This document shows, one piece after another, positions 30,816-51,403 of a stretch of DNA of 62,435 nt. The notes under the pieces were generated by a model. It ran no database searches and had not been told where the DNA came from. It saw only the letters and a program-made list of their open reading frames with translations. Position numbers and translations under genes: made by a program. The number at the start of each line of letters is the position of its first letter. Position 1 is the first letter of the stretch. The DNA lies in the NCBI GenBank assembly GCA_964199315.1, contig OZ116698.1:6262001-6324435 (forward strand). Reading direction: 5' to 3'. This DNA is from Orbicella franksi. Taxonomy: Eukaryota.

Positions 30816-31835
30816 CTGGACATACTAAAAAGTCCCTTTGCCTGCACTCCATTGAGAAATCTATTATTATGAGGCTGTCGTGACCACAATTATGTCTAGC
30901 CGGCCATGTTGCTAAACCGTTAATTAGGTGCTTAACAGAATTTCTAGCCAGCTTGTCATCATAAATACGAAGTTAAGGGATGAACCGTGACGGGTCAACA
31001 AAATAGTTGACTGCAACTATAATAAGAAAATCAAAAAAAGATTAATAGAACTATATCTTTAGGAAAAGAATGCAGGTAGTTTCAAGCAATTGTTGCTATT
31101 GTTGTTATTATTGTTTATCGTTTTATTTTGCTTTATGAGGTAGTATCGATGACGTATCTTTTTATTTTCTAGGAACGTGTAGCTTTAAAGGTATGATGTA
31201 AAAGGTTTAATTGGTTATTTATCCTATTTTTCAAAGCTGCTAAGGTTACATCCGAAGGGTAACATCTCACAACAATCTGTGAATTTTTTCTGAGCCACCT
31301 AGATGATCTATGATTAGTCGAGAGGAGGATCCCTAACGGTTTTATACGAAAAAAACGACCTCGCATCTCTAAACCCGTTTTGTTCGTTTTATTTTGATAC
31401 AAATGGTTCACAATTCTCCACTGTAGCTCTGCATTCGACCGGTTAGGTTCTCTGTGTTGGAAAGAAGTCACACGAGACTTCGCTACACTAATTTACTGTT
31501 AAAACTGTCATGGCGCTAGAAACCATTCAAAAACCAAGTACCTTCCTGGGCTACATTGTTCAGTGGCTGTTTATCAATCTTTGAGAGAGGGGGAAGGGAG
31601 AAGAATGTCTACACACCTTACCATGCCAACTGCATTATACAAGACAGATGTGCCAAGTTTTCTACATTTTAGACATAATTCTTGGTTGTAAGATTTTTAT
31701 CTTTAATGTTGTCACTATCGCGTTTTCGCTAACATGTCTATACATAGTGACAACAGACTTCACAAATCTCTACATTTTGCCATCGAGTCGTCCTGCCGTT
31801 AGCCTGGGCACAGTGGCATTAGTACAAAATACAAA

Positions 31836-34800
31836 TTATGAGCAAAAATCTGGTATTTTGACGATACGAATCTTGTTTAAATCACTCTTCCAAATTTCAT
31901 CGTTACTTTTTATGGTACAAACTGAATTTGATATTTGTTCTATTTTGCCCTCTCTAATTTGGCCTGGTGAAGTTGCATCCTCTCCAAGGACTAAGGTCCC
32001 TATAGCTAATTCATGGACGTTTGGTTTCTCATCTAGAATCACGTGTTCCATATTCATCATTATGCTCTTAGTTTTCCCGGGAAGAAAGACTTCCGGGTTG
32101 TACTCCACATCGATGTATTCTCCTACAAATCCACGCTGATATCTACCGTTTTCCTTGATAAGAACAGCAGAGCCTCGCATAATACAACCTAGAAAGAGTA
32201 AGAAATGCGATGAGCCTAGTGATCCTACCGTGTGTCAAGGCTTGACATATTAGAAACGAGGTTTAATAGTTTGTAAGGAAGGATTGATTGCTTAGGGGGA
32301 GGGGTTATGTATGTAACAGTGTGTACCCTCAAAGTATCTCAAATGTGAAAGCGAGTAGTCTTCCGATGTTGAAACTTCCACCACGTCCCCTAATTGCTTC
32401 CCCGCACTTCCATCAAAGTTGGTAAAGCGATCGTAGGATAAAGAAGGCCTTAGGGGCATATATACGAGGCTTTGTCTTTGTCAATAAATTATAGACTCTT
32501 ACCTTTGGGAATTCCACATCCATAGACTTCGGCTCTTAGACAAATCGATTCCTTTATATTTTTTAACACTTTGATTCGTACAGACTGAGCAATAAATGGA
32601 TGTATTGCTTTTATTTGTTCCTCTTCTTCACTATAAGGTGGCTGTCAGATAAAACCAAATACAAATATTAGAAGTGAAAATTCTGTTGAAATTTCTTTGC
32701 AGTGTCTTTAAAATGGATTGATTTTACAAAGATAACCAATTTGCAGCATTCGATTACAACTATCATTTGGCTCCATTTCTCTTCACTACTCCCTGCCTCT
32801 CCTTTTTCCTTCCTTCTTCTCTCTCTGTTGACGAATACGATACGCCAGGTCCTATATTGTAATAAAGTTGATGTGTTATATGCTATTCTCATTTATCGTG
32901 TTTATTTAACTATTACATAGAGCACGAGTCTGTGTTTAAGACTAATGACTAAGCCACGATGTTTAAACGTGTAAAAGTTCAAAAAGTCGGGAATGTTTAG
33001 TGCTGTTTTTCTATTTGTTCGCTTTTTTCTCGTGTATATTTATCTCGTTCTCATTTAAGAATTATATTGTTTCCGTTTTCTACAAATGATAAAGCAAGTT
33101 TCACCTTTTCATAATGGAAATCCAACCACGCTTTGAAAATTTGGCCTTTCAACACTATACTTTTGATCTTGTATTCGCTTTTGAGTTGAATTCTTGCTCC
33201 AGTAATCTTATATTTTTTGGGCAAGTTAATCTGAATAAAATCATCCTTTCCCCCCTCTGAGCACCAATAGTTGCCTCCACCAAGTCGGCCATTATGAGCT
33301 GGATGTTGAACTCTATGACTGGAAGCTTTGATGGATGCGTCTGGGACCTTTCTACTTTCCATTCCAAGAGGAAACCCTGTGCCACAATCTTAAATATTGA
33401 AATAACACTAATATGAGCCTCTAAAACTCCAGCACAAAGACATTAGAATGATAGCAGAATGATAACAGAATCAAAGCCAAATTAATCACACAGGGGCACG
33501 TAACCTAAGAGATCAATCAGAGGGCACATTATTGTACACAGGCGAGAAACGGATTAATTTGCAGGGATAGGCTAAAGAAAGAGTTTATATCGAATAATCC
33601 AATTGTAGAGCTCCGCAAGGACAAAGTCAGAGGAAACGTAAATATAAACGTACAAAAAGCAATGGACGGGAAAACGTAAAGATGGATGTGCAGATGGATC
33701 ACTGAATGCAAGTGCACGAAATCTGATAATTATCAATGGACTGGCTGACAAACGGTTTAAATGCGTTTAAAAGCGCAGATTCTTCTTTGAAATTAGACCA
33801 AAAATGTCCGTCTTGCAATGCTTGCTCTAACTTGGAATTCTAACTCAAATTCTAAATCAAAATTGTATGAAGTACGCTACTGAGCAGGGAGTAACGAAGC
33901 ACTGGGTCTGGACGCCTTTTATGACCAGGTACTTAAGTAAATAAATTCAAAAAAAAAAATCATATATTGGAGGGAAAAGAAAAGTATATTTAGTTATCAT
34001 TGGTTAATAAGTTACCTTGGCATGTTGGCAGTGCTTGATCCCACTGCCCATTGTTGCATTTTGCCTGAGAGGGACCTTGTAACAAGCGATCTCCCAAACA
34101 TTCAAACTCGACAACTGAGGTATGATTAAAAAGTCTTCCAATGGTTTGTCCATTTTCTGGATGACCGGGATCAGGGCAGGATGCTGTGAAACATGAAAAT
34201 GAATCAGAGTATGAAAAGATTATTACGTTTATATAAAAGAGCACCAGAATAAACATTCACAATTTGAAATAGGGTTGTCATGGTTATATGAACTTCCTTG
34301 AATAAAATCATGCCATCCCAAATAGCATACAGACAAATTTTCGACTAAATCGCAAAGTTTTTAAATCAAATATTGACAAAGTTGTAAATGGTTAAATTCA
34401 GGAAAGGACAGTCCACCCTTAGACTGATTTCCGGGATGAGAGGGGTTAAAACAAATTGCACAGTTGAAATTGTATTTATTACGAAAGGTTTACCTAAGCA
34501 CTTCGGTATTTCTCTATTCCAGTTCTTGCTTTTGAGACAAGTTAGTTTGCCGCTTCCCACCATGGTGTAGTTTTCACTGCACTTAAATCGCACGAATCCG
34601 CCGACAGTAAAGTTCTTTTTGACTTTCGATTGTCGTCCATGTGAAGGACTTCCTGGATCTTTACATGAAATAACTGAAAAGTAATTAATACAGTTTTATT
34701 AAAGTGGTGGTGCTCATACAACTAACCAATAGAAACCTTGCGATTACGCAATTCATGCATAGTCAATGAGCGTAAAACAAAAGATGTGCAGGGTCAAGGG

Positions 34801-40800: not shown

Positions 40801-43098
40801 CAATATCTCAATATACAATCGGTTTTAGTTATTACTGTAAAAATACTAGTAAAAGAGTGCTTTTGGCCAGAAAACCAATACAGAACACGGGTCTGACGAT
40901 AGCATCCTGCTACACAGTCCATATGCTCTACCACAGCCATCAACCACACCTATAAAATCTACAACTGGTTGCAAGGTTAGATTTTTACTATTTTGTATGC
41001 CTTCACATAAACATGTTTAAACAACGCAAGTTGTATCAGGGGAAAGTAAATGAATTAACATTCATTGGTGAAGAGGAACGGACAATAGACGAAGGCCTAT
41101 TTCACGTAACCCAATCATTAATTTAAGTCCAAGTGTTTGGGATACATAACTGACTTTATGTAGCTAAGGTATATTTTAATATGTAAATAGTGTCCCCAAA
41201 TAGTCATTTTAAGCTATATACCGTTGACACTGAAATGAAGTCGTTCATTCATTCATTCATTCATTCATTCATTCATTCATTCATTCATTCATTCATTCAT
41301 TCATTCAATTAAAGACACCTAATATAACCGTTTCGATAACGAAGACTTGTAAAACTGGAAGTTGAAACCAAAGGAAAGCAAGACGCTGTCTATAATTATT
41401 TTTACTATTCGTCTGAATGCGTAGGACTTTGGATAATAGAAATACATGAATGATCACTTCTTCACTTGCACATGTTCACTTGGACTTTGAAAATATTTGT
41501 AAAATCGCGAATAAATGCCAAAACATTGCATATCTATCTGGAAATTGAACACCTTTATGCCTAAAAGCCTAAAGGTCAAGGTTAGAAATCGAGCCCAAAA
41601 GTAAAGGCAGATATTCCAAGGGCGTTATGGTATACCTCACCCAATAAGCTATTGTGAACTTGCCTTATTATCATTGTATGAATTTCAGGTCAGTCTCGGC
41701 AACCAGGTGGGATTTGTTAAATAAGTTTTTCAGGTCCAGTTGCAATATTTTTTCTCGATTTATAGTGTACCAAATTAGCACGGGAGTACTGAAAAGCATG
41801 ACACGAAAAACAGTTTAGTTACATCTCTCTCCACTTTTTTTTCTTTTTTTTTTTAGCAAATGTCATTACACGTTCCCGCAGTCTAAAAACGGTATAACAC
41901 TACAGCTTGTACAATAGTAGTACTTCATTTATACCAGAAGGCAAAGGTGGCAATGTAGAAATCACGTAGATATGTTGAAAACAAAGCGCAAGAATGATAA
42001 TTCCAAATGAACCTGTTTTCATTGGTCTTGCAACGTATCTGGACATAAAGAACCCCCGCTGGGACTCCCATGTAAAAAGGAGGGGTGCAGGTCGGAAATT
42101 TTGAAAGGAAGCCCTAAGAGGCACCAAAATCCTGTTTTGTAAGCGTGGCATTAAGTCTTTTTCAACCCCCCGGGTTCAACTCTAAGAGGCACTAATTCAA
42201 AAGAACACATTATCCCCCATTATACGTTTTTCTTTTCGTCTCAATACTCTAAAAGGTACCCCAAAAGCTCCATCTTTTGAGGATGAAGACCCTAAGAGGT
42301 TCCAAAACCGAGTTCGTATACAGTATTTATTTTATATGGGAGTCCACCTCCCCCAGGGATGAGACCATATGGCGTGACACCAGTGTGAACGACACAGATC
42401 AAATTTTTAGTAGAAGAGCCAGAAGCCGAGAGGTTTATCGCGATAAGGTAAAAAAAAGGAAAAACAAAAAAAAGAAGCTGTGAAAACCATGGTGAGAGGA
42501 TTTTGAGCGATTAGGTCAAAAGGCCAGAGTCATCAGAGTTTCAATCTTAGCAGACACGCTGAAAGGAAATGACGCCATAGATGGCGCTAACGCAGCTGAA
42601 GCGAATATTTCTTCGTCCATAGACGCTGTTGAGCAGAATTGCGTTCATCCTTTCCATTTGGTGAATTCTAGAACAAGGCAGTCAGTATTTTGACTGGTGT
42701 TTTGTAGACAGGTAACCATAACGGCATAACAAAAAGAGATGACTGTGCTAAATCTCAAATTGTGTAAAATCTGTTGCACACGTAGGAAGGAATTTCTTAC
42801 CTCGTTTGACGCAACTGTAGCCGCAATCCCCATCACACACACAGTCTCTGTTACCTTTGCAGTCATCCTGAGCGGGATCACAGGGTTTCGAGCAAACTTT
42901 GGGCTGGCGATTTGTACGAGTGCAGTTCTGACATCGAATGCCTAACAACAAATGTCAATGCAGCAAGTTACATTACGAGAGCTCATGATTGCAGCATAGT
43001 AATTTAAGCGTCCCATTATGTTAAACTTAAGATCATGAATTCGTAACCCAGTTACCTTGAACAGCGAAAAAGGCAAGAATAACCACTGCGTATTTCAT
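31836..43098 (-). CDS. Gene B: secreted WAP-CCP2-WAP-CCP9-F5/8C(discoidin)-tandem Tudor/SH3-like protein, about 1007 aa, 16 exons
   Basis: Exons 43056-43098 (signal MKYAVVILAFFAVQ, aaaacaATG context), 42801-42941 (WAP-like), 40602-40769, 40122-40421 (CCP+WAP), 39513-39683, 39062-39256, 38010-38189, 37270-37443, 36731-36910, 36027-36206, 35317-35484, 34494-34673, 34016-34183 (CCPs), 33105-33388 and 32503-32641 (CGTGFPLGMES...CLRAEVYGC = F5/8C), 31836-32188 (terminal). Lengths sum to 3024 nt in frame. Confidence 0.9.
38225..38790 (+). mobile_element. Decayed Penelope-like element 3' fragment (GIY-YIG endonuclease) in a gene B intron
   Basis: Translates GAIYSIPCQGCDKSYIGETKRKFSTRLREHQKAV...SALAEHC, then a frameshift/stop, then EAWEMN...LNRGDGMHLP; followed by a taatgaaggctgaag...ccgaaa tail. 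Confidence 0.85.
39770..40085 (+). mobile_element. Degenerate tRNA-derived SINE
   Basis: A-box-like gtagctccgtagttagagcgtcc and a B-box-like gagttcgacctccgtcggg unit. Confidence 0.5.
41244..41306. repeat. (TTCA)n microsatellite
   Basis: Seen directly. Confidence 0.95.
42050..42355. repeat. Dispersed repeat related to 13598-14120
   Basis: Shared subsequences in opposite orientation. Confidence 0.5.
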
Positions 43099-44155
43099 TG
43101 TTTTAAAAACGCAACTCGTTACGACTGTGTGAAACTCACACAGGAAGTTTTATACCCGAGACGTCGTGGGTGCTACTGGCAAAGCATCAAGTTTCCCCCT
43201 GGCAATACGTCATATGATTGATGGCGTTCTTGTTGTTGTGAGACGGCGCTGAATCATTACTGTACTTGAGACGATGATCATCGTCTCTTGTTACTGTGCT
43301 ATTTTGATGTATTAATTTTTTCTTCTGCATGCTTTTCATCTAAAAACGTGGGAGCTTTCGGTTTTACTTTGTCGGCTTAGCACTGAGTGAGAGAGAAAAT
43401 GTTTGCAACAGTGATAGCATAGAGCCTATTATTGGTCTTTAGCCACGTAGAGGATCCTGAGCAATCCAACCTTTCTAAGCTAAAGCTATTCACCAGTACC
43501 CAGTGAGTAAGCTCTCTAACAAGTCACGGGTGGAGGGTACAAAGCTGTCTTTTTCCTCTCTCCCTATCTCTGTCAGACCATTTCACTACAGCTGGATGAA
43601 GGGAACAAAAGGGAGGGTGGGTCGCCGAGCGTTTGTGCATCAAACGTGAGAATGTGCTTCAGCGTTCAAAAAAAAAAAAGGGAAAAAAATTGGACAAATG
43701 AGAAAAGTCGGACGGGAACGTGATGATCTTCACGCAGATCCAGTTGAACCCGATAAATTCTACACCTATTTTGACTATCAGGTATCGTCTAAGTCAAGTT
43801 GTTTGTCCACGGGATATGATAACAAAAGCTTCCACATTCAATAAAGATCACTCAATGAACGCACAATAACACTTGATTATATATAGGTAATCATGTTATG
43901 TTGAAGCAATCCAATGATTTCGAATTTCATTTAAAATGTCTTTTTCAATTCCTTTAAATTATATCTTTTACTTTCTAACCGCTAAAGAACACCACAGCCC
44001 TGAGGATTTAACTAAAAATGAATTCTAATTAACTCCGACTACTCGCGATCATCTGGCTTGCCAAGGCTAGCCTCCATACTTCCGCTTAAGCTGAAAGGAA
44101 AGTTTCCCAATCTGGGCGTCAATAATTTTACTTCGACTGAAATGTGATTCGGAAC

Positions 44156-47100
44156 ATGGCGGCCATTAGCACGATACACATTGTTGTTCTTTCCTGTCTC
44201 CTTCTGTCGTCTGTAAGAGGTAAGAAGTACCAACTAAATTAATGGGAAAATTCTACTGTCATTCCGCGGTTGATAAATGAGTCATAACGACCTGAGGGCA
44301 GAAATATCAAGATATAACATTCCTTTGACTACTTGCTGAAGCAGACGCCACTCCTTGGAAACTGAAAAACCCTAAATAATAAGTGGAAGACAAAACAGTT
44401 TGTAAGTGATTGTAAGCCACAGAAACAGTTGATCGTACAGAGACCTACAGGACACTAGAATGAACACGAACTTGGTTGTTGCCATCAAACGAAGGTCAAT
44501 GCATGCGTCTCTCTGTGAAATATATAATTTGCAAGACTAATTTAGAGCAAAGTGAAAGGAAAAATAACGTTGGAAACAAGGCATTGGCTAAACGGAACTC
44601 AATCAGTGCCAGGCATAATATAATTTTCGACCTTTTTAAATTCTTATTGGCCTCGAATTTCGTAGCACAGCAGTGTGGTTTGTGGCAGTTTTCCCGTGAG
44701 TCGATCGCGTTGTTTATATAAGCCCCGGTGAGGGTGAGGGCTGGGGAAAGAAGGAAGTACACTGTGTCAAGAGATGGTGATCTAGATCACAGTCTCTTGA
44801 CTCTGTATGTTACACTGACAGGATACTACACAGACCACTGAGAGTTAAAATCGTGCTTTGGTAGTATACTAAGAGACTTATTTTCAGCCAAAATTTGCTA
44901 AATAACCGGTAAACTACCGCTTTATAAGTCCCCCCCCCCCCCACCCCCTTCCCCTGGTCATTGGCCCAGCTGCCTGTAAACCGAAACAAACCCGCTCTCT
45001 AGCTTTCCTTGTTTTGAATGCTATAATGTTTTACAGCTTAATTAACAGTATATGTGAAAACATTTTTGGTCAACATGTGCAGCTATAGCTTGTTTCGAAA
45101 CGGTTTTTTATTCCGGTTATAAGCCCATCGAAAAGCCCTTACGAAGTTGGATAAGCCCAATGCTTATAAGCGGTAGTCTAAGTTAGTTTAATTGTGTAGC
45201 TAAGGTTTAATTTTGCGTATGTGTAGGGTAGGGTATGTTTCGTACATTCCAATAAATTGAGCCACGATAGACATAAACTAATTTGCCACAGTGTGTGCTA
45301 CAGTATTTAACTCTAGTTCGGACACACCTATCCACTTACAATACAAAAATACACTGTACACTGTTATTTCTCAAGGGTAAAAATACTTACTCTGCGTCCC
45401 CAGAAATGAATTGTGGTGCCTTCGAAATGTTTTCTCTATTAGTTTTCGCCGAACATGGCTATCACGGTCATATTTAAATCCTACCTCCGGGTGCAAATTA
45501 TGCGATTGGAATAGTCCGCCATATTGGAATAGCCGACAATTTACGAAAATAGTCCAGTTTCGAGTCCACCATGATCGCTGAATAAAAGCACTGGGAACGT
45601 ATTTGCACAGGGTTAGCCTCGACCTAAAAAATATTCACAAATACCGGTGGGAACAGTGCCACAAATTTGAAAATTAAACAATACACAGAGCTGTAAACAG
45701 GTCATCTTCTCGCTGGAATTTGTGAATATTTAACTTTAGATCGAAGCTAATCCTGTACAAATGCGTTCTCAGTGCTTTTAATTAGCGGTCATGGCGAACT
45801 CGAAACTGGACTATTGCTTGACTCGGAAACTCGCTCCCAGGACTTCTCCGTTGCCCTTCTGGGCCGTGCCTACCCCTCATTACTCCCGTTCTAAACAGAA
45901 AATTACCTGAAACTCTTACACAATAACTGGCGCCAAGTAAATGTAGAAACACAGCAGGAAATAGAACATTACTTTTAGCCCTTCCAGAGACAATAAAAGC
46001 AAAATTAATGTAATTAGTAAAACAAGAGGTAAAGAAACAATGTAAAATTTATTGACGCTTTTAGGGTAATATGGCTAAAGTCATTTTTCTTACATAGTTA
46101 TACTGATTCGTGGTCCCATATCACGCCTTGCAGGGGATGTTTGCGGAGACCCGCCAAAAATTAACAACGGTAAAGTACAGACTGAGTCGAAAACGGGCAA
46201 CGTCACGGCTTTTTACACCTGTGACAAAGGGTTTGTCAAAGTTGGTGAAGAAAAAATTGCTTGTCTTTCATCTGGTAAATGGAAGAAAGCCACGATCAAA
46301 TGTGGTAGGTAGCAACACAGCTTGTGGCGTATTTCAAGTGGTAAACAATACTTTTTTTTTTCCACAACGTTGTCCAAATACTTCATTGAGGTGAACAGCG
46401 GCTTTTGTTCCTTTTTGTGAGCCAATAGTGTTTTCGTGGTTCCTTATGTATTAGCCTTACCTTATAGGGAACTCGCCGCCTGCCTATTTGTCACAGGGAT
46501 GGAGAGATACATCGTTTGGACATATTGACATATGTTCTATTGCTTCGTAAGGATTTTTTTCTATTATCATTTCACTTAGTTGCAGTCTGTCCTTTACCAC
46601 CCATTCCACCACATGCGTTCATTAAAAGGCCAAGATCACAATATCTCGAGGGAGACTGGGTATTCTACGCCTGTAGACCAGGATATCGACCTCTGGATGG
46701 ATTGGTCTTTAATCGGTGCTTACGAGGAACGTGGAAGAAAGTGACATTCAAGTGTGTTGGTAAGCGTGTGCACTAAATATGTCCACTTGAGAGTACCCAG
46801 AATTTTATCTCCCTGGCAGTAGTGCACCATCTAGGCAACCCAGCAGCGGTTTAAGTTAGCAAGTAATCCTATATAATTCTCATTCTTAAATCTTAAACCT
46901 ATAGTAAACAAGCAAACTCAAGCCCCTCTCCGTGTTTTGACAGGGATGGGGGTTGATTGAGATGCCTTCGGGTTTTCGTTGACATTAAAACTGTCCACGT
47001 AATGAGCTGCTTTTGTTGATCATGAAGAGACGTCCGCTATCTTGGATCCGCCATCTTGAATTCGACAATTTTTGATTTCACCATTTTTTCACAAGTCAGA

Positions 47101-48587
47101 AAATAAGTAAACGAAATTGGTGGGAAATTGATCCAAAATGATAACAGAATTTAAATAGGTACTTATTTTGCAATGCTACTCAAGCGGATAATCCTCGTTC
47201 TAAAGTTCTGATAAAAAACCTTTAGAGGGTTGAACTGGCATCCATCTCCACCCCTTTTGTACACCGCAAGGTTAATCGAAACATGCTACACTGTTATCTT
47301 CTTCCATAACATTTAATACTCCCTCCTTAACTTCATTCGTTTCCTTTCTTTCTTGTCTAAATATTCCAAGGATATCGCAGTTTTCTAAAAAGAATTAACC
47401 ATAACTTTTAAGGAGACTTGATTCCCCTGCACCTAACAGCTCGATTGTAAGGACCGGCGTTTAAATGTTTTGAGTCACTCGAACTAGCTGATATCTCTTT
47501 CTAGTGTCCAAGGAATGCAAAAGGCCAGAGGATCCCAAAAATGGTGAAAAATTCGGTAGTGATTTCTCTGTTGGCAAAAGAGTGAGGTATACCTGTGATA
47601 CTGGCTTTGTTCTTCAAGGAGCTTCAGAAATCAAATGTTTGAATAATCGAACGTGGAGTGGCGGAGCGCCATCTTGCAAAGGTAAACACAAGATCCACGG
47701 CTCTGCACAGACGTGCACACACACACACACACTTTACTTCTCCAATTCATTAATAATTCACCACATTTCCAAACACCTCGAGGTTAGCCAAAAATATTTT
47801 CCTACGTGTCGTATTTTCAAATCTATTCTCGGTTTTTGGAAATGTGGTAAAACATGGTCTTTCTTGTTTGATATATTACATATAGGGAGCTTTCAGCAGC
47901 ATGTTTGCAAATAAATGCCAAAACTCCTTCGAGGATTTTTTCTGCTCTACTCCTTTATTTCGAATGCTAATGGAAAGATCGTGATGGTTGGTCAATTTCT
48001 CCCCGCCCCGATTCTCCCGTCGATTTGCTAGAGATGAAGGCTTAGGGATCACGCTTTGTTTCAAAGAAGCGATGAATGATAGCTAAGTTTAAATGATGTC
48101 ATTATTCTCTACGCAAGTGGTAGTTATTCCCTTTGTTAGTTGTTGACTGTGGAAGCCTACCAGATCCTGTCCATGGAAGGAAAATCAAGGAAACGAAAAC
48201 TACGTTTGGAGGCAGAGCTGATTTCATTTGTAAGAAGAGAGGGTATTCTTTGATCGGGAAGAAGAGCCGATTATGTCAAGCTAGCGGTGCATGGAGCGGC
48301 AAGCCAGTGGTTTGTAAAGGTGTATAATTAAAGCTAATTAACACGTTTTTTTGGTAAGGACATAGTTAGTTCCCTCTGGTAACTATGGTTAGGGTGGTTG
48401 TGATTATGTTCAATACAAATTATGTTAAGAACGAGTAGTGCACGAAGAATCTCTGATAATTTCCGGTGTTAGTTAGTTTGTTTAGTCAACTGTTTGTTGA
48501 TAATTTTCCGCCGATTTTTCTTTCTTTCTTTCTTTTTTTTTATCTTGATTGCAGGGACTGTTGATGTTGTTCGTTTCATCGTTATTG

Positions 48588-48634
<47 letters not shown>

Positions 48635-51403
48635 GATGAAAGATTCGCACAGCTATTGATGATATTGAAGCTGGTTTCGTCATTGGCTCCGGGCAACAAC
48701 AAGTTGCCTAAGGAAGCCAAGAAACACCCCTTGTTTGCTTTTTCTCTTCTTTCTACATCTCCAGCACCTTTCTAAGAATTCTTGCCGACCCCAACAATGC
48801 ACATCTCTGGATCAGTCCAACAGGAATGCCNNNNNNNNNNNNNNNNNNNNNNNNNNNNNNNNNNNNNNNNNNNNNNNNNNNNNNNNNNNNNNNNNNNNNN
48901 NNNNNNNNNNNNNNNNNNNNNNNNNNNNNNNNNNNNNNNNNNNNNNNNNNNNNNNNNNNTTGTCCCTCAAGCAAAACAGGCGGAGAATGTAAGTTGTGGC
49001 CAAAAGTTTATTTTACAAAACAAAGCCTAGTTCAAACAAAATTCTTCAAACGCCAGTTTAGCGTCATCCATCATTCATATCATTTTTGTACATGGCTACT
49101 TCTCTTAGTAGCTGTATATAGATATTCTTAGTCACTAAATATTCCTTTCTGCTGATTCCATGTGTAGCCCCTTGTGGTGATCCTGGGAAACCAGTTGGTG
49201 GACGACGAATTGGAAAGAGCTTCAGGCATGGAAAAAAAGTGAGATTCAGCTGTATGGAATCTCTGAAGATTCAAGGACCAAAAAGAATTATTTGTTTTGA
49301 TGGAGTTTGGAGTGACAAGAAACCTATGTGCCTGCCCCCTTCGCAAGTAAAAGGTAAACGAACGTTTCCAATTTGAATGTATGAAAGATCGAAAATATAT
49401 ATCCCACAAGCGCATTAAATTCTTGTTTCTTACTTGGCCCTCTCCTTTCTTGAAACTTAGGTCTGCATCCAGGCCAAATAGTCCATCAGGCCAGCGCTCA
49501 TTTGACTTGTCTCTTTGATCTTAACATGAGTAAGAAGTACTGAAGAAACCCTTATTTTTAGATTATTCAGAGTGCGGTATGCGGAGTAAAATTCGCCTTT
49601 CTCGAATGGTTGGTGGTGTTCCAAGTACTCATGGAATGTGGCCCTGGCAAGCTGGACTGTATAGACTTGATCAAAAGACCGGTGAGATTAATTAAATGTG
49701 TTTCTCATAATCAAATAGAAATGAAGGCATTTTAAAGTACTCGAACTTTAAATATATAATCCCAACCTCCTCTCTCTTGGATCGTAAGGATTACACAAAA
49801 CATCTGAACGCATACAAGTGTATAAAAGTGTTCGCTTTCTTTCGCTGATTCTAACTCCGTTCTCAGCCAATTAATGCAACGTAGTTCAGTTATCAAAACC
49901 CTTTTAGAATCGATGCAAAAAAATGGTCTAGAAGCGAACTTGCCATGAGAGATTACCTTCTTATTTAATATTTACTGTGAAAATGTAGAAACCTCTGCCT
50001 CTCCCATAAATCACCGACGGAGCGAGACTAGCAAGAAACAAAAAACAAAATTTTCCCGGATTATTTTTCCCATCCTCGATCTGCATGGCAGGCTAGTAGA
50101 CTGCTCGGAGGACATTGCCCTTCAGGGATGGTTTGTTGGTCTGTTATTGTTGTTATTCTTTTTCATGTGTCACGTCCAGGCGAAAAACAGTTTCTTTGTG
50201 GTGCAGCGCTGATTGAGCGACAGTGGATTATCACTGCAGCACACTGCTTTATGTACAGACACACAGAAGATCAAGTCAGACGCCCTCTTACATCTCCACC
50301 AGAAATGTAAGTCAGGTTGTTCGCTTAATAGAAAGGTTAACCACCTTCCAACTTCAGCAGAGCTATACTACTTAGCCACCTGTAGCAGTGACTAATATTG
50401 ACCAATGAAGCCACAGAAAACTTCTATGGTGGAGTTGAGTTTGAAATATCTAGAACCACTATGCATGTACGTGCGTACTTTTGTGCAGCACCGTAATTGT
50501 AATTTTGAGTCCCTATTTGAGGGATGTTTTTATTTACTTATGTTTTTCTTACTCCAATTGACGATTTCAATAGAGAAGTGTTAAAATAACGTGCAGTGAA
50601 AGGAGAGGGGAAAGGGCAAAATGTAGTGAACTAATTACAGTGTATATGCCCTTTAATTAGATACGTTCATATTAGGATAAAAATAAAATTAGTATAAGAG
50701 AGGAAAGAGTAAACAAGAAGTAAATAAATAGTCTATGTAAATGGGTTATTTATTCTTATATTTTAGTGTTCTTTGTTATGCTGTCTTCTTCAGGTATAAG
50801 ATCATGGTTGGCGACAGTATGCGCGACATAGAAGAGGACTCAGAGCGTACATTCTTCGCGACTAAAATAATAATGCACCCTGGATACCATGACCACTTCA
50901 AAGAGAATGACATTGCTTTGGTCAAGTTATCCACCAAAGCGACACTTACACGGAATGTAAGGAAAGTTTGTCTCCCAGAGTCGGCCAACAGCTCGACACG
51001 TTGCGATAGCGTAACCCCTGGAAGTCAAGGGTTTGTTGGAGGCTGGGGAGCGACACAAGTGTTAAGCCCAGGAGAGACCGTAAACTCTGAAAACTCGTCA
51101 TCTACGGTGTTAAAGTACGCTAAGTTCAAAATTCAGGACGCAGAGCTGTGCCGCAACTCTACTGACTACCACTTTAACGAGTCTCTAAATTTCTGCGCGG
51201 GAGGCGATAAACATGGCGTCGGTCCATGTACGGGCGACAGTGGAGGTCCATTCGTCATGAATATGTTCCAGGGCGGCGCATGGAAATGGGTTGCTGTAGG
51301 CCTCGTTAGCTGGGGGGAGGGGTGTGGCATCCAAGGTCGATATACATTTTACACTAAGCTAGCAACTTATGTAGACTGGATTAACAAGCACACCAGGAGA
51401 TGA
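44156..51403 (+). CDS. Gene C: secreted 5x CCP + trypsin-fold serine protease (MASP/C1r-s/factor B/factor C-like, no vWA or CUB exon seen), about 604 aa
   Basis: Exons 44156-44219 (signal MAAISTIHIVVLSCLLLSSVR), 46134-46304 (alternative acceptor 46098), 46580-46759, 47505-47681, 48140-48319, 49168-49353 (CCPs), 49562-49681 (ECG..LSR|MVGG..WPWQ), 50180-50306 (LCGAALI..WIITAAHC), 50794-51403 (ENDIAL, GDSGGP, stop). Lengths sum to 1815 nt in frame. Confidence 0.92.
44913..45177. mobile_element. MITE-like element
   Basis: Termini ACTACCGCTTTATAAG ... CTTATAAGCGGTAGT with internal TATAAGCCC subrepeats. Confidence 0.55.
45548..45815. mobile_element. Foldback/MITE with about 100-bp imperfect inverted arms
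   Basis: AATAGTCCAGTTTCGAG...AATATTCACAAAT arm mirrored by ATTTGTGAATATT...CTCGAAACTGGACTATT. Confidence 0.7.
48591..48830 (-). mobile_element. 3' end of an R4/Dong-like non-LTR retrotransposon ending in (TAA)n
   Basis: Minus-strand GIPVGLIQRCALLGSARILRKVLEM* (stop at 48753), about 120-nt 3' UTR, then about 14 TAA units; the upstream part is in the N gap. Confidence 0.6.
48831..48959. other. Assembly gap (N run)
   Basis: Run of N. Confidence 0.99.

Follow-up and report, generated by a model that had tools for sequence, protein, structure and literature searches.

A predicted tandem Tudor tail behind the discoidin domain of a secreted CCP protein in the coral Orbicella franksi

The tandem Tudor domains (TTDs) of chromatin readers such as SETDB1, BAHCC1, Sgf29 and UHRF1, like those of FMRP/FXR and the tandem Agenet domains of plants, comprise two SH3-like five-stranded barrels spanning about 115 residues, are nuclear or cytoplasmic, and carry an aromatic cage for methyl-lysine. 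Eukaryotic barrels of the Tudor and chromo type are treated as intracellular readers of chromatin or RNA-protein marks, in contrast to secreted bacterial versions (PMC5906684). The latter, bacterial chromo-like and SH3b domains, are extracellular SH3-fold barrels, often in tandem and with likely disulfide cysteines, that are proposed to bind cell-wall or matrix peptides (Kaur et al. 2018, PMC5906684). The stretch of DNA analysed here, referred to as the window, is 62,435 nucleotides (nt) of Orbicella franksi (assembly GCA_964199315.1, contig OZ116698.1, positions 6,262,001 to 6,324,435), and on its minus strand, at 43098-31836, lies a gene whose product ends in a 117-residue tail with the same two-barrel organisation as the chromatin-reader TTDs but which, in contrast to them, stands behind a signal peptide, Sushi/CCP domains and an F5/8C discoidin domain. 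Taking all the evidence jointly, we assign a probability of about 0.8 to the view that this is a secreted coral protein with a CCP stalk ending in a discoidin-TTD cassette, a putative rigid extracellular binding head.

The predicted fold of the tail

An earlier inspection of the letters without database searches (the sequence-only reading) had quoted peptides from the last exon and proposed that they form a tandem Tudor/SH3-like module. The peptides are present in the minus-strand frame 32188-31839, closed by a stop at 31838-31836, and AlphaFold2 (AF2), Foldseek and VIA-align agree on the nature of the module. AF2, run on an alignment of 18 sequences, gave a model of the tail with a predicted local confidence (pLDDT) of 90.5 and a predicted template-modelling score (pTM) of 0.81, all five models scoring 89-90.5. 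It consists of two five-stranded barrels, the first at about residues 5-52 and the second at about 62-110, joined by the linker LDEKP, with strands assigned at residues 8-13, 16-25, 32-35 and 50-52, then at 66-70, 78-87, 90-95, 98-103 and 107-109. The proposal that the tail contains two similar β-rich halves therefore holds for the model, where each half forms its own five-stranded barrel, but hardly for the sequence, in which the likeness is weak (hhalign, P 0.04 across 19 columns that keep the register of the β1-β2 hairpins). The internal duplication is thus visible in the predicted structure, its sequence likeness being marginal.

Searched against the PDB with Foldseek, the model matched only tandem Tudor, Agenet and MBT readers, among them BAHCC1 (template-modelling score, TM, 0.70), SETDB1 (0.68), FXR2, 53BP1 and UHRF1. 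VIA-align placed the SETDB1 TTD at Z 11.5 and those of Sgf29, BAHCC1 and UHRF1 at Z 10-11, and its list was alike among the Foldseek candidates and in a wide search independent of Foldseek. Overall, the tail superimposes on the chromatin-reader TTDs with Z 10-11.5, a root-mean-square deviation of about 3 Å over 109-113 residues and TM up to 0.70, at sequence identities of 11-17%. The top structural score outside corals is the N-terminal domain of Capicua (Pfam Cic, PF16090, formerly DUF4819), a nuclear transcription repressor, which matches over residues 3-117 with TM 0.79 in the AlphaFold database (AFDB) and 0.81 in the ESM Atlas, at 16% identity and with no sequence-level signal found. Among the AFDB clusters, a 357-residue 'F5/8 type C domain-containing protein' matches through its C-terminus (TM 0.81, 24% identity), and a language-model search ranks bacterial Tudor_3/Agenet clusters first (score 0.89, 169 shared features). 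A match to a known extracellular fold had been named in the sequence-only reading as an argument against its proposal; none of the structure-search lists contains a known extracellular eukaryotic fold. These matches indicate that the tail is, as modelled, a TTD fold.

A more specific likeness, to DUF4537, had been proposed, and here the outcome is mixed. The DUF4537 protein C11orf16 is indeed a structural match (AFDB TM by query 0.72 for the human and 0.67 for the mouse protein), and the tail as modelled shares its fold; a representative of a DUF4537 cluster, a family that also includes VWA3B, reaches TM 0.58. C11orf16 is not the best match, however, since CIC, SETDB1 and BAHCC1 match the tail as well or better. 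By sequence, the window's own tail has no match to DUF4537 (PF15057), and indeed none to any Tudor-clan family in Pfam at E up to 10; the profile is hit in two of 18 relatives, below threshold (at best 15.2 bits, E 0.022, against a gathering cut-off of 27). In one of them, P0001, the hit is colinear over almost all of the domain, residues 9-105 matching positions 9-103 in a profile of 120, and DUF4537 is the sole Pfam family to match more than one member of the tail's family. A Pfam match of the tail alone to UDPG_MGDP_dh_N was at chance level and was discarded, and the family profile found nothing below E 0.3 among PDB sequences. DUF4537 proteins are not known to carry a signal peptide.

The gene, its transcripts and the tail's family

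The window is AT-rich eukaryotic DNA with a GC content of about 38-40%. The minus-strand gene at 43098-31836 has 16 exons that encode 1007 residues, with AG/GT at all junctions and a single open frame of 1007 codons. Its product comprises, in order, a signal peptide, a Cys-rich module, eleven Sushi/CCP domains with a second Cys-rich module among them, the discoidin domain and the tail, and contains 68 Cys and seven N-x-S/T sites. Exon 1 (43056-43098, phase 1 out at a GT donor) carries the ATG and the signal peptide (MKYAVVILAFFAVQ/G), which was assessed by eye and by hydropathy. MKYAVVILAFFAVQG is the start of the sole ATG-initiated frame 3' of a TATA-like box (TATAAAA, 43148-43154, minus strand) that lies about 50 nt 5' of the start codon and was recognised as a motif in the letters alone. 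This exon holds the protein's sole strongly hydrophobic 19-mer; elsewhere the Kyte-Doolittle maximum is 1.09, and neither a hydrophobic C-terminus nor a transmembrane-like 19-mer is found outside the signal peptide. The presence of a signal peptide and of no other hydrophobic 19-mer argues that the product is a secreted protein without a membrane anchor, in keeping with the sequence-only reading, which had seen no transmembrane segment or glycosylphosphatidylinositol-like tail and had made the module the C-terminal part of a secreted protein with CCPs and discoidin, as the full 16-exon model also does.

Exon 2 (42801-42941) encodes the first Cys-rich module, with nine Cys. The eleven Sushi/CCP exons, identified by Pfam together with splice sites and frame, lie between 40769 and 34016, are each phase 1-1 and are positioned at 40769-40602, 40421-40122, 39683-39513, 39256-39062, 38189-38010 and 37443-37270 (exons 1-6 of the array) and at 36910-36731, 36206-36027, 35484-35317, 34673-34494 and 34183-34016 (exons 7-11). 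Every one of them exceeds the cut-off of 20.7 bits for Sushi/CCP (PF00084), with scores of 28.5-49.6 bits and E of 2e-6 to 5e-13 per exon. The second Cys-rich module occupies the second half of the exon at 40421-40122. Both Cys-rich modules had been taken for WAP domains (PF00095), an assignment that has to be dropped: neither matches any Pfam family up to E 10, and their Atlas neighbours are noise, a mixture of knottin-like and toxin families scoring 0.75 at best.

The discoidin domain is divided between two exons. Exon A (33105-33388, phase 1 in, phase 0 out) encodes the first two thirds of the domain and alone scores 29.5 bits against PF00754 (E 9e-7, cut-off 28.2); exon B (32503-32641), which ends in YGC, a hallmark of discoidin domains, followed by GIPK and a phase-1 GT donor, aligns to profile positions 95-127. 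In the spliced ortholog P0037 the same profile gives 41.5 bits over positions 2-127 of 127. The domain runs from DCGTG to YGC and so has a Cys at its start and another at its end. The tail exon (31839-32188, phase 1) comes directly after a polypyrimidine tract with an acceptor AG at 32190-32189, joins the discoidin exon ending at 32503, and is followed by the TAA stop codon (31836-31838) and a 3' untranslated region (UTR) at 31696-31835, delimited by alignment of relatives' transcripts, with an ATTAAA poly(A) signal at 31707-31702.

Whether transcripts join this tail to the CCP array had been raised as a decisive point, and in close relatives they do. The relevant sequences are Joint Genome Institute (JGI) metatranscriptome contigs from related corals, each open end to end and taken as transcript-derived. 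The protein encoded by contig L006 is 83-93% identical to exons 12-16, colinear and with identical junctions, and its 3' UTR is 95% identical over 136 nt to 31831-31696, ending at the ATTAAA; the 3' UTR of L005 is 92% identical over 190 nt. L006, L005 and L001 all show discoidin exon A joined to the CCP exon before it, L001 being open throughout and consisting of about 3.5 CCPs, discoidin and tail, and an identical discoidin-tail junction is seen in L001, L005 and L007. L007 (53-1339, JGI sample 3300008014) encodes a complete small paralog with its own signal peptide, an immunoglobulin (Ig)-like region, discoidin and tandem Tudor; the Ig-like region was called by eye and has zero Pfam matches. 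As read from its sequence, L007 is a second, independent case of the tail behind a signal peptide. L005 (2-1942, JGI sample 3300008037) runs from the C-terminal end of a trypsin-like protease through six CCPs and discoidin to the Tudor tail. Its fifth CCP is best matched by the window at 5536-5369 (82%) and its later parts by 34184-31839 (80-89%), and it may represent a paralog of the form protease-CCP-discoidin-TTD or else a chimeric assembly. Three more long genomic contigs retain the order discoidin A, discoidin B, tail, with tail identities of 37-44%. The discoidin-tail cassette has been reused behind a CCP stalk, behind an Ig-like region and possibly behind a serine protease.

Against 1.84 billion representative proteins, phmmer with the tail returned 20 matches, of which 18 are credible and most are open reading frames (ORFs) of exon size, and a family profile search recovered 58 clusters at 90% identity, a small family. 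None of the phmmer matches that were listed and inspected resembles a transposase, and a link to the Tudor-tailed Zator transposon finds no support among them. Because the tail is retained across at least 58 clusters and is present in transcripts that are spliced, its ORF is not there by chance. Only two members have names, and both are discoidin+tail fragments from stony corals, one a hypothetical protein from Oculina patagonica and the other from Desmophyllum pertusum; the sequence searches recovered no named member outside Scleractinia. The D. pertusum fragment (P0039, NCBI/UniRef), discoidin plus tandem Tudor, is publicly annotated 'DNA damage responsive protein', a name that looks misleading and ill-suited for an evidently secreted discoidin protein and that may derive from its Tudor similarity. 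The bacterial-looking phmmer matches are only a repeat protein and P0014, from a likely chimeric 851-nt contig (L008, ENA ERZ27314241), in which a bacterial-type PAF-AH-like hydrolase N-terminus is in frame with half of a coral Tudor barrel. P0014 was considered as a case of gene transfer and rejected; its two parts meet midway through barrel 1, the k-mer contig is short and stops before the ORF does, and P0014 is most likely an assembly chimera.

In window tail numbering, G6, S7, K12, Y17, D53, E54, L61, V67, G81 and R108 are invariant in 17 members of the family, and G76, S102 and C116 are almost invariant. Most members overall share W100; in the nine longer ones it is invariant, together with the YGC closing discoidin, the GC at the start of the tail and the last Cys, and the two domains are connected in every one of these nine by five residues, G-[IV]-P-[KR]-G. 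Cys91, probably buried, is swapped for Tyr or Trp in some members.

The ratio of nonsynonymous to synonymous substitution (dN/dS) in the tail is 0.36 against paralogs, at a synonymous divergence (dS) of about 0.85, and 0.5-0.8 against close relatives at dS 0.08-0.15. By this measure the tail is at least as constrained as the discoidin and CCP parts; the discoidin-TTD cassette is conserved under purifying selection, in a gene whose compared 3' half evolves fast. The history of this half seems to be mosaic. When window 33388-31839 is compared with L001, dS is 0.20 in discoidin and 0.85 in the tail, a four-fold gap between adjacent exons that suggests gene conversion or exon exchange among paralogs. 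The CCPs of L005 and L001 are best matched by the other CCP array in the window (7259-5369), a pattern that likewise points to exchange among paralogs or, for L005, to a chimeric assembly.

Ligand binding, origin and rival explanations

Discoidin domains bind lipids or glycans, and SH3-fold barrels bind short peptides or nucleic acids. In the proposed mechanism the protein would be docked by its discoidin domain to a surface of lipid or glycan, and the TTD would bind a second ligand, probably peptide-like or charged. The candidate site for this ligand lies around the linker between the barrels, where charged and aromatic residues are invariant; it would comprise K12 and Y17 (β1/β2 of barrel 1), D53-E54 in the linker itself, and R108 together with the mostly conserved W100 in barrel 2. 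The module would be stapled by a disulfide between Cys2 and Cys116. In the AF2 model isolated β-bridges at residues 3 and 115 adjoin these two cysteines, from which we infer that the bond ties together the module's ends, as is usual in extracellular modules. Conserved cysteines at both ends set the tail apart from the chromatin-reader TTDs.

A two-domain model of a discoidin+tail ortholog reached pTM 0.70 on a nine-sequence alignment, and because of this score and of the fixed short linker the model suggests that discoidin and tail form a rigid pair. When this model was used for a shape search of the Atlas, no cluster pairing discoidin with Tudor was found and the only shape match was DDR1 (TM 0.57 by query), in which discoidin is likewise tightly followed by a second β-rich domain. 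The DS-like domain of DDR1 is, however, a large jelly-roll and not a double Tudor, so that its likeness to the coral cassette is one of general shape only.

The origin of the module bears on how it might work. The sequence-only reading had proposed co-option of an intracellular fold, a claim that we regard as not established, given the secreted bacterial tandem domains (PMC5906684) and the bacterial neighbours found by the language model. Recruitment of a eukaryotic intracellular TTD is nevertheless distinctly favoured over descent from secreted bacterial chromo-like domains, because of the DUF4537 signal, weak as it is, and the structural matches to CIC and C11orf16. The alternative, which we consider unlikely, is that a coral ancestor acquired secreted, tandem, disulfide-bearing bacterial domains of the chromo-like or Tudor type, which exon shuffling then placed, in phase 1, behind discoidin; the module would in that case act as SH3b or chromo-like domains do in bacteria, for instance by recognising microbial wall peptides. 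Its nearest language-model neighbours are indeed the bacterial Tudor_3/Agenet clusters, the fourth-ranked Atlas cluster is 75% bacterial (TM 0.73), the best E-value among the AFDB clusters belongs to an unnamed 272-residue protein aligned from residue 20, and the entire domain is carried on a single exon; moreover, the bacterial chromo-like domains are consistently secreted, tandem and provided with probable disulfide cysteines (PMC5906684). Yet the Atlas score falls under that search's own guide of 0.9 and 170 features, phmmer over the 1.84 billion representatives found no credible bacterial relative, the sole recurrent Pfam signal is the eukaryotic DUF4537, and the top TM-scores are those of eukaryotic CIC and a coral protein. 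The bacterial chromo-like domains are also described as retaining the aromatic cage (PMC5906684), of which no complete set is evident by sequence in the coral tail. A bolder proposal, to which we give a slender chance, is that discoidin-TTD is a new animal extracellular recognition head, its double barrel, whether inherited from bacteria or converted from a nuclear reader, binding microbial cell-wall or matrix peptides at the tip of CCP stalks and possibly of serine proteases.

The tail could instead be a structural or oligomerising cap, for instance if an unpaired Cys91 and the odd ninth Cys of the N-terminal module formed disulfide-linked multimers. Two modules do have odd Cys counts, nine and three, and the short, invariant discoidin linker and the two-domain pTM of 0.70 would suit such a cap. 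Replacement of Cys91 by Tyr or Trp in several members, and its apparently buried position, speak against an inter-chain bond, and the invariant residues K12, D53, E54 and R108 are charged or polar, as for a binding surface; we therefore hold the cap to be an outside chance. At slightly longer odds still, the tail might read methylated lysine or arginine outside the cell, on histones or on methylated proteins from damaged cells or microbes. The top structural matches are all methyl-lysine readers, Y17 is invariant in the 17 members, W100 is conserved as described, and position 91 is Cys, Tyr or Trp. Against this, the position at the end of β1 where the first cage aromatic usually sits is taken by the invariant K12 in barrel 1 and by Gly/Glu (G69/E70) in barrel 2, and β2 of barrel 2 starts with Ile-Arg (I78/R79), so that among the barrel 2 cage positions only C/Y/W91 and W100 could contribute. 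As judged from sequence and DSSP register, the usual cage of three or four aromatics, present in the chromatin-reader TTDs, is found in neither barrel, and with no full cage apparent the tail is unlikely to read methyl-lysine or methyl-arginine.

The secreted discoidin-TTD interpretation has its own weaknesses. The fold is predicted from a shallow alignment of 18 sequences, and the inferred contact between Cys2 and Cys116 and the apparent lack of a cage were both read from sequence and the DSSP string. The splice support comes from relatives' transcripts, as opposed to reads of the O. franksi genome itself, and L005, with its protease end, CCPs and cassette, may be chimeric. The dN/dS of 0.5-0.8 extends across the whole 3' part among close orthologs and could reflect relaxed constraint in place of adaptive recognition. 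The shallow alignment and the origin of the splice support would also be the grounds for supposing that the tail exon lies outside the CCP gene or that the fold is an artefact of the alignment, but we regard this as close to negligible, as the same junction recurs in four independent transcript contigs and three genomic loci, the 3' UTR matches relatives' transcripts, the five AF2 models agree in score, and two structure aligners, the language-model search and the weak Pfam matches all indicate the Tudor clan.

The neighbouring genes and the place of the cassette

The gene lies head to head with a CCP-rich gene on the plus strand (46516-51403) that ends in a trypsin-like serine protease domain (ORF 50741-51403, containing GDSGGP), and another protease-like gene and CCP array are nearby. 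Because of this head-to-head CCP-protease gene the neighbourhood is a complement-like gene cluster, and because the studied gene adjoins CCP-serine-protease genes, the likeliest role of its product, as inferred from this setting, is in a complement-like recognition or regulation system or in adhesion. The plus-strand gene region includes a run of N at about 48830-48960, an assembly gap or masked stretch. The second CCP array (561-7879, minus strand; tblastn matches at 7879, 7259, 6630, 6167, 5536, 4393, 4166, 3000, 1988, 1514 and 725) lies 3' of a trypsin-like remnant (17465-17370) and heads towards the window start. Since its CCPs are the best matches of those in L001 and L005, a discoidin-TTD cassette may also lie at its 3' end, outside the window. 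Elsewhere, two pairs of ORFs in opposite orientation, 56068-56268 (minus) with 57591-57773 (plus) and 45411-45581 (plus) with 45782-45952 (minus), are almost identical over part of their peptides (MTRPNQGLSSLAPGGGKMRDPGNEV for one pair, ...IVQFRV.HDR for the other) and look like inverted copies of repeat elements.

Literature searches on extracellular or secreted Tudor domains and on DUF4537 returned nothing relevant save PMC5906684, and they gave no characterised protein of this architecture, in line with the sequence-only reading, to which none was known. The fold itself is known; the searchable literature appears to contain no description of the sequence family, of its extracellular placement in an animal or of the discoidin-TTD cassette, and the combination of discoidin with a TTD is unusual and is surprising to specialists in domain evolution. 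With a conserved, probably disulfide-stapled TTD at its tip, the secreted coral protein would counter the view that such domains in eukaryotes are intracellular only, and would indicate that Tudor-type folds can reach the extracellular repertoire by exon shuffling. Should the ligands of the module be microbial or belong to the matrix, the complement-like CCP/protease gene clusters of corals would gain an extra recognition domain.

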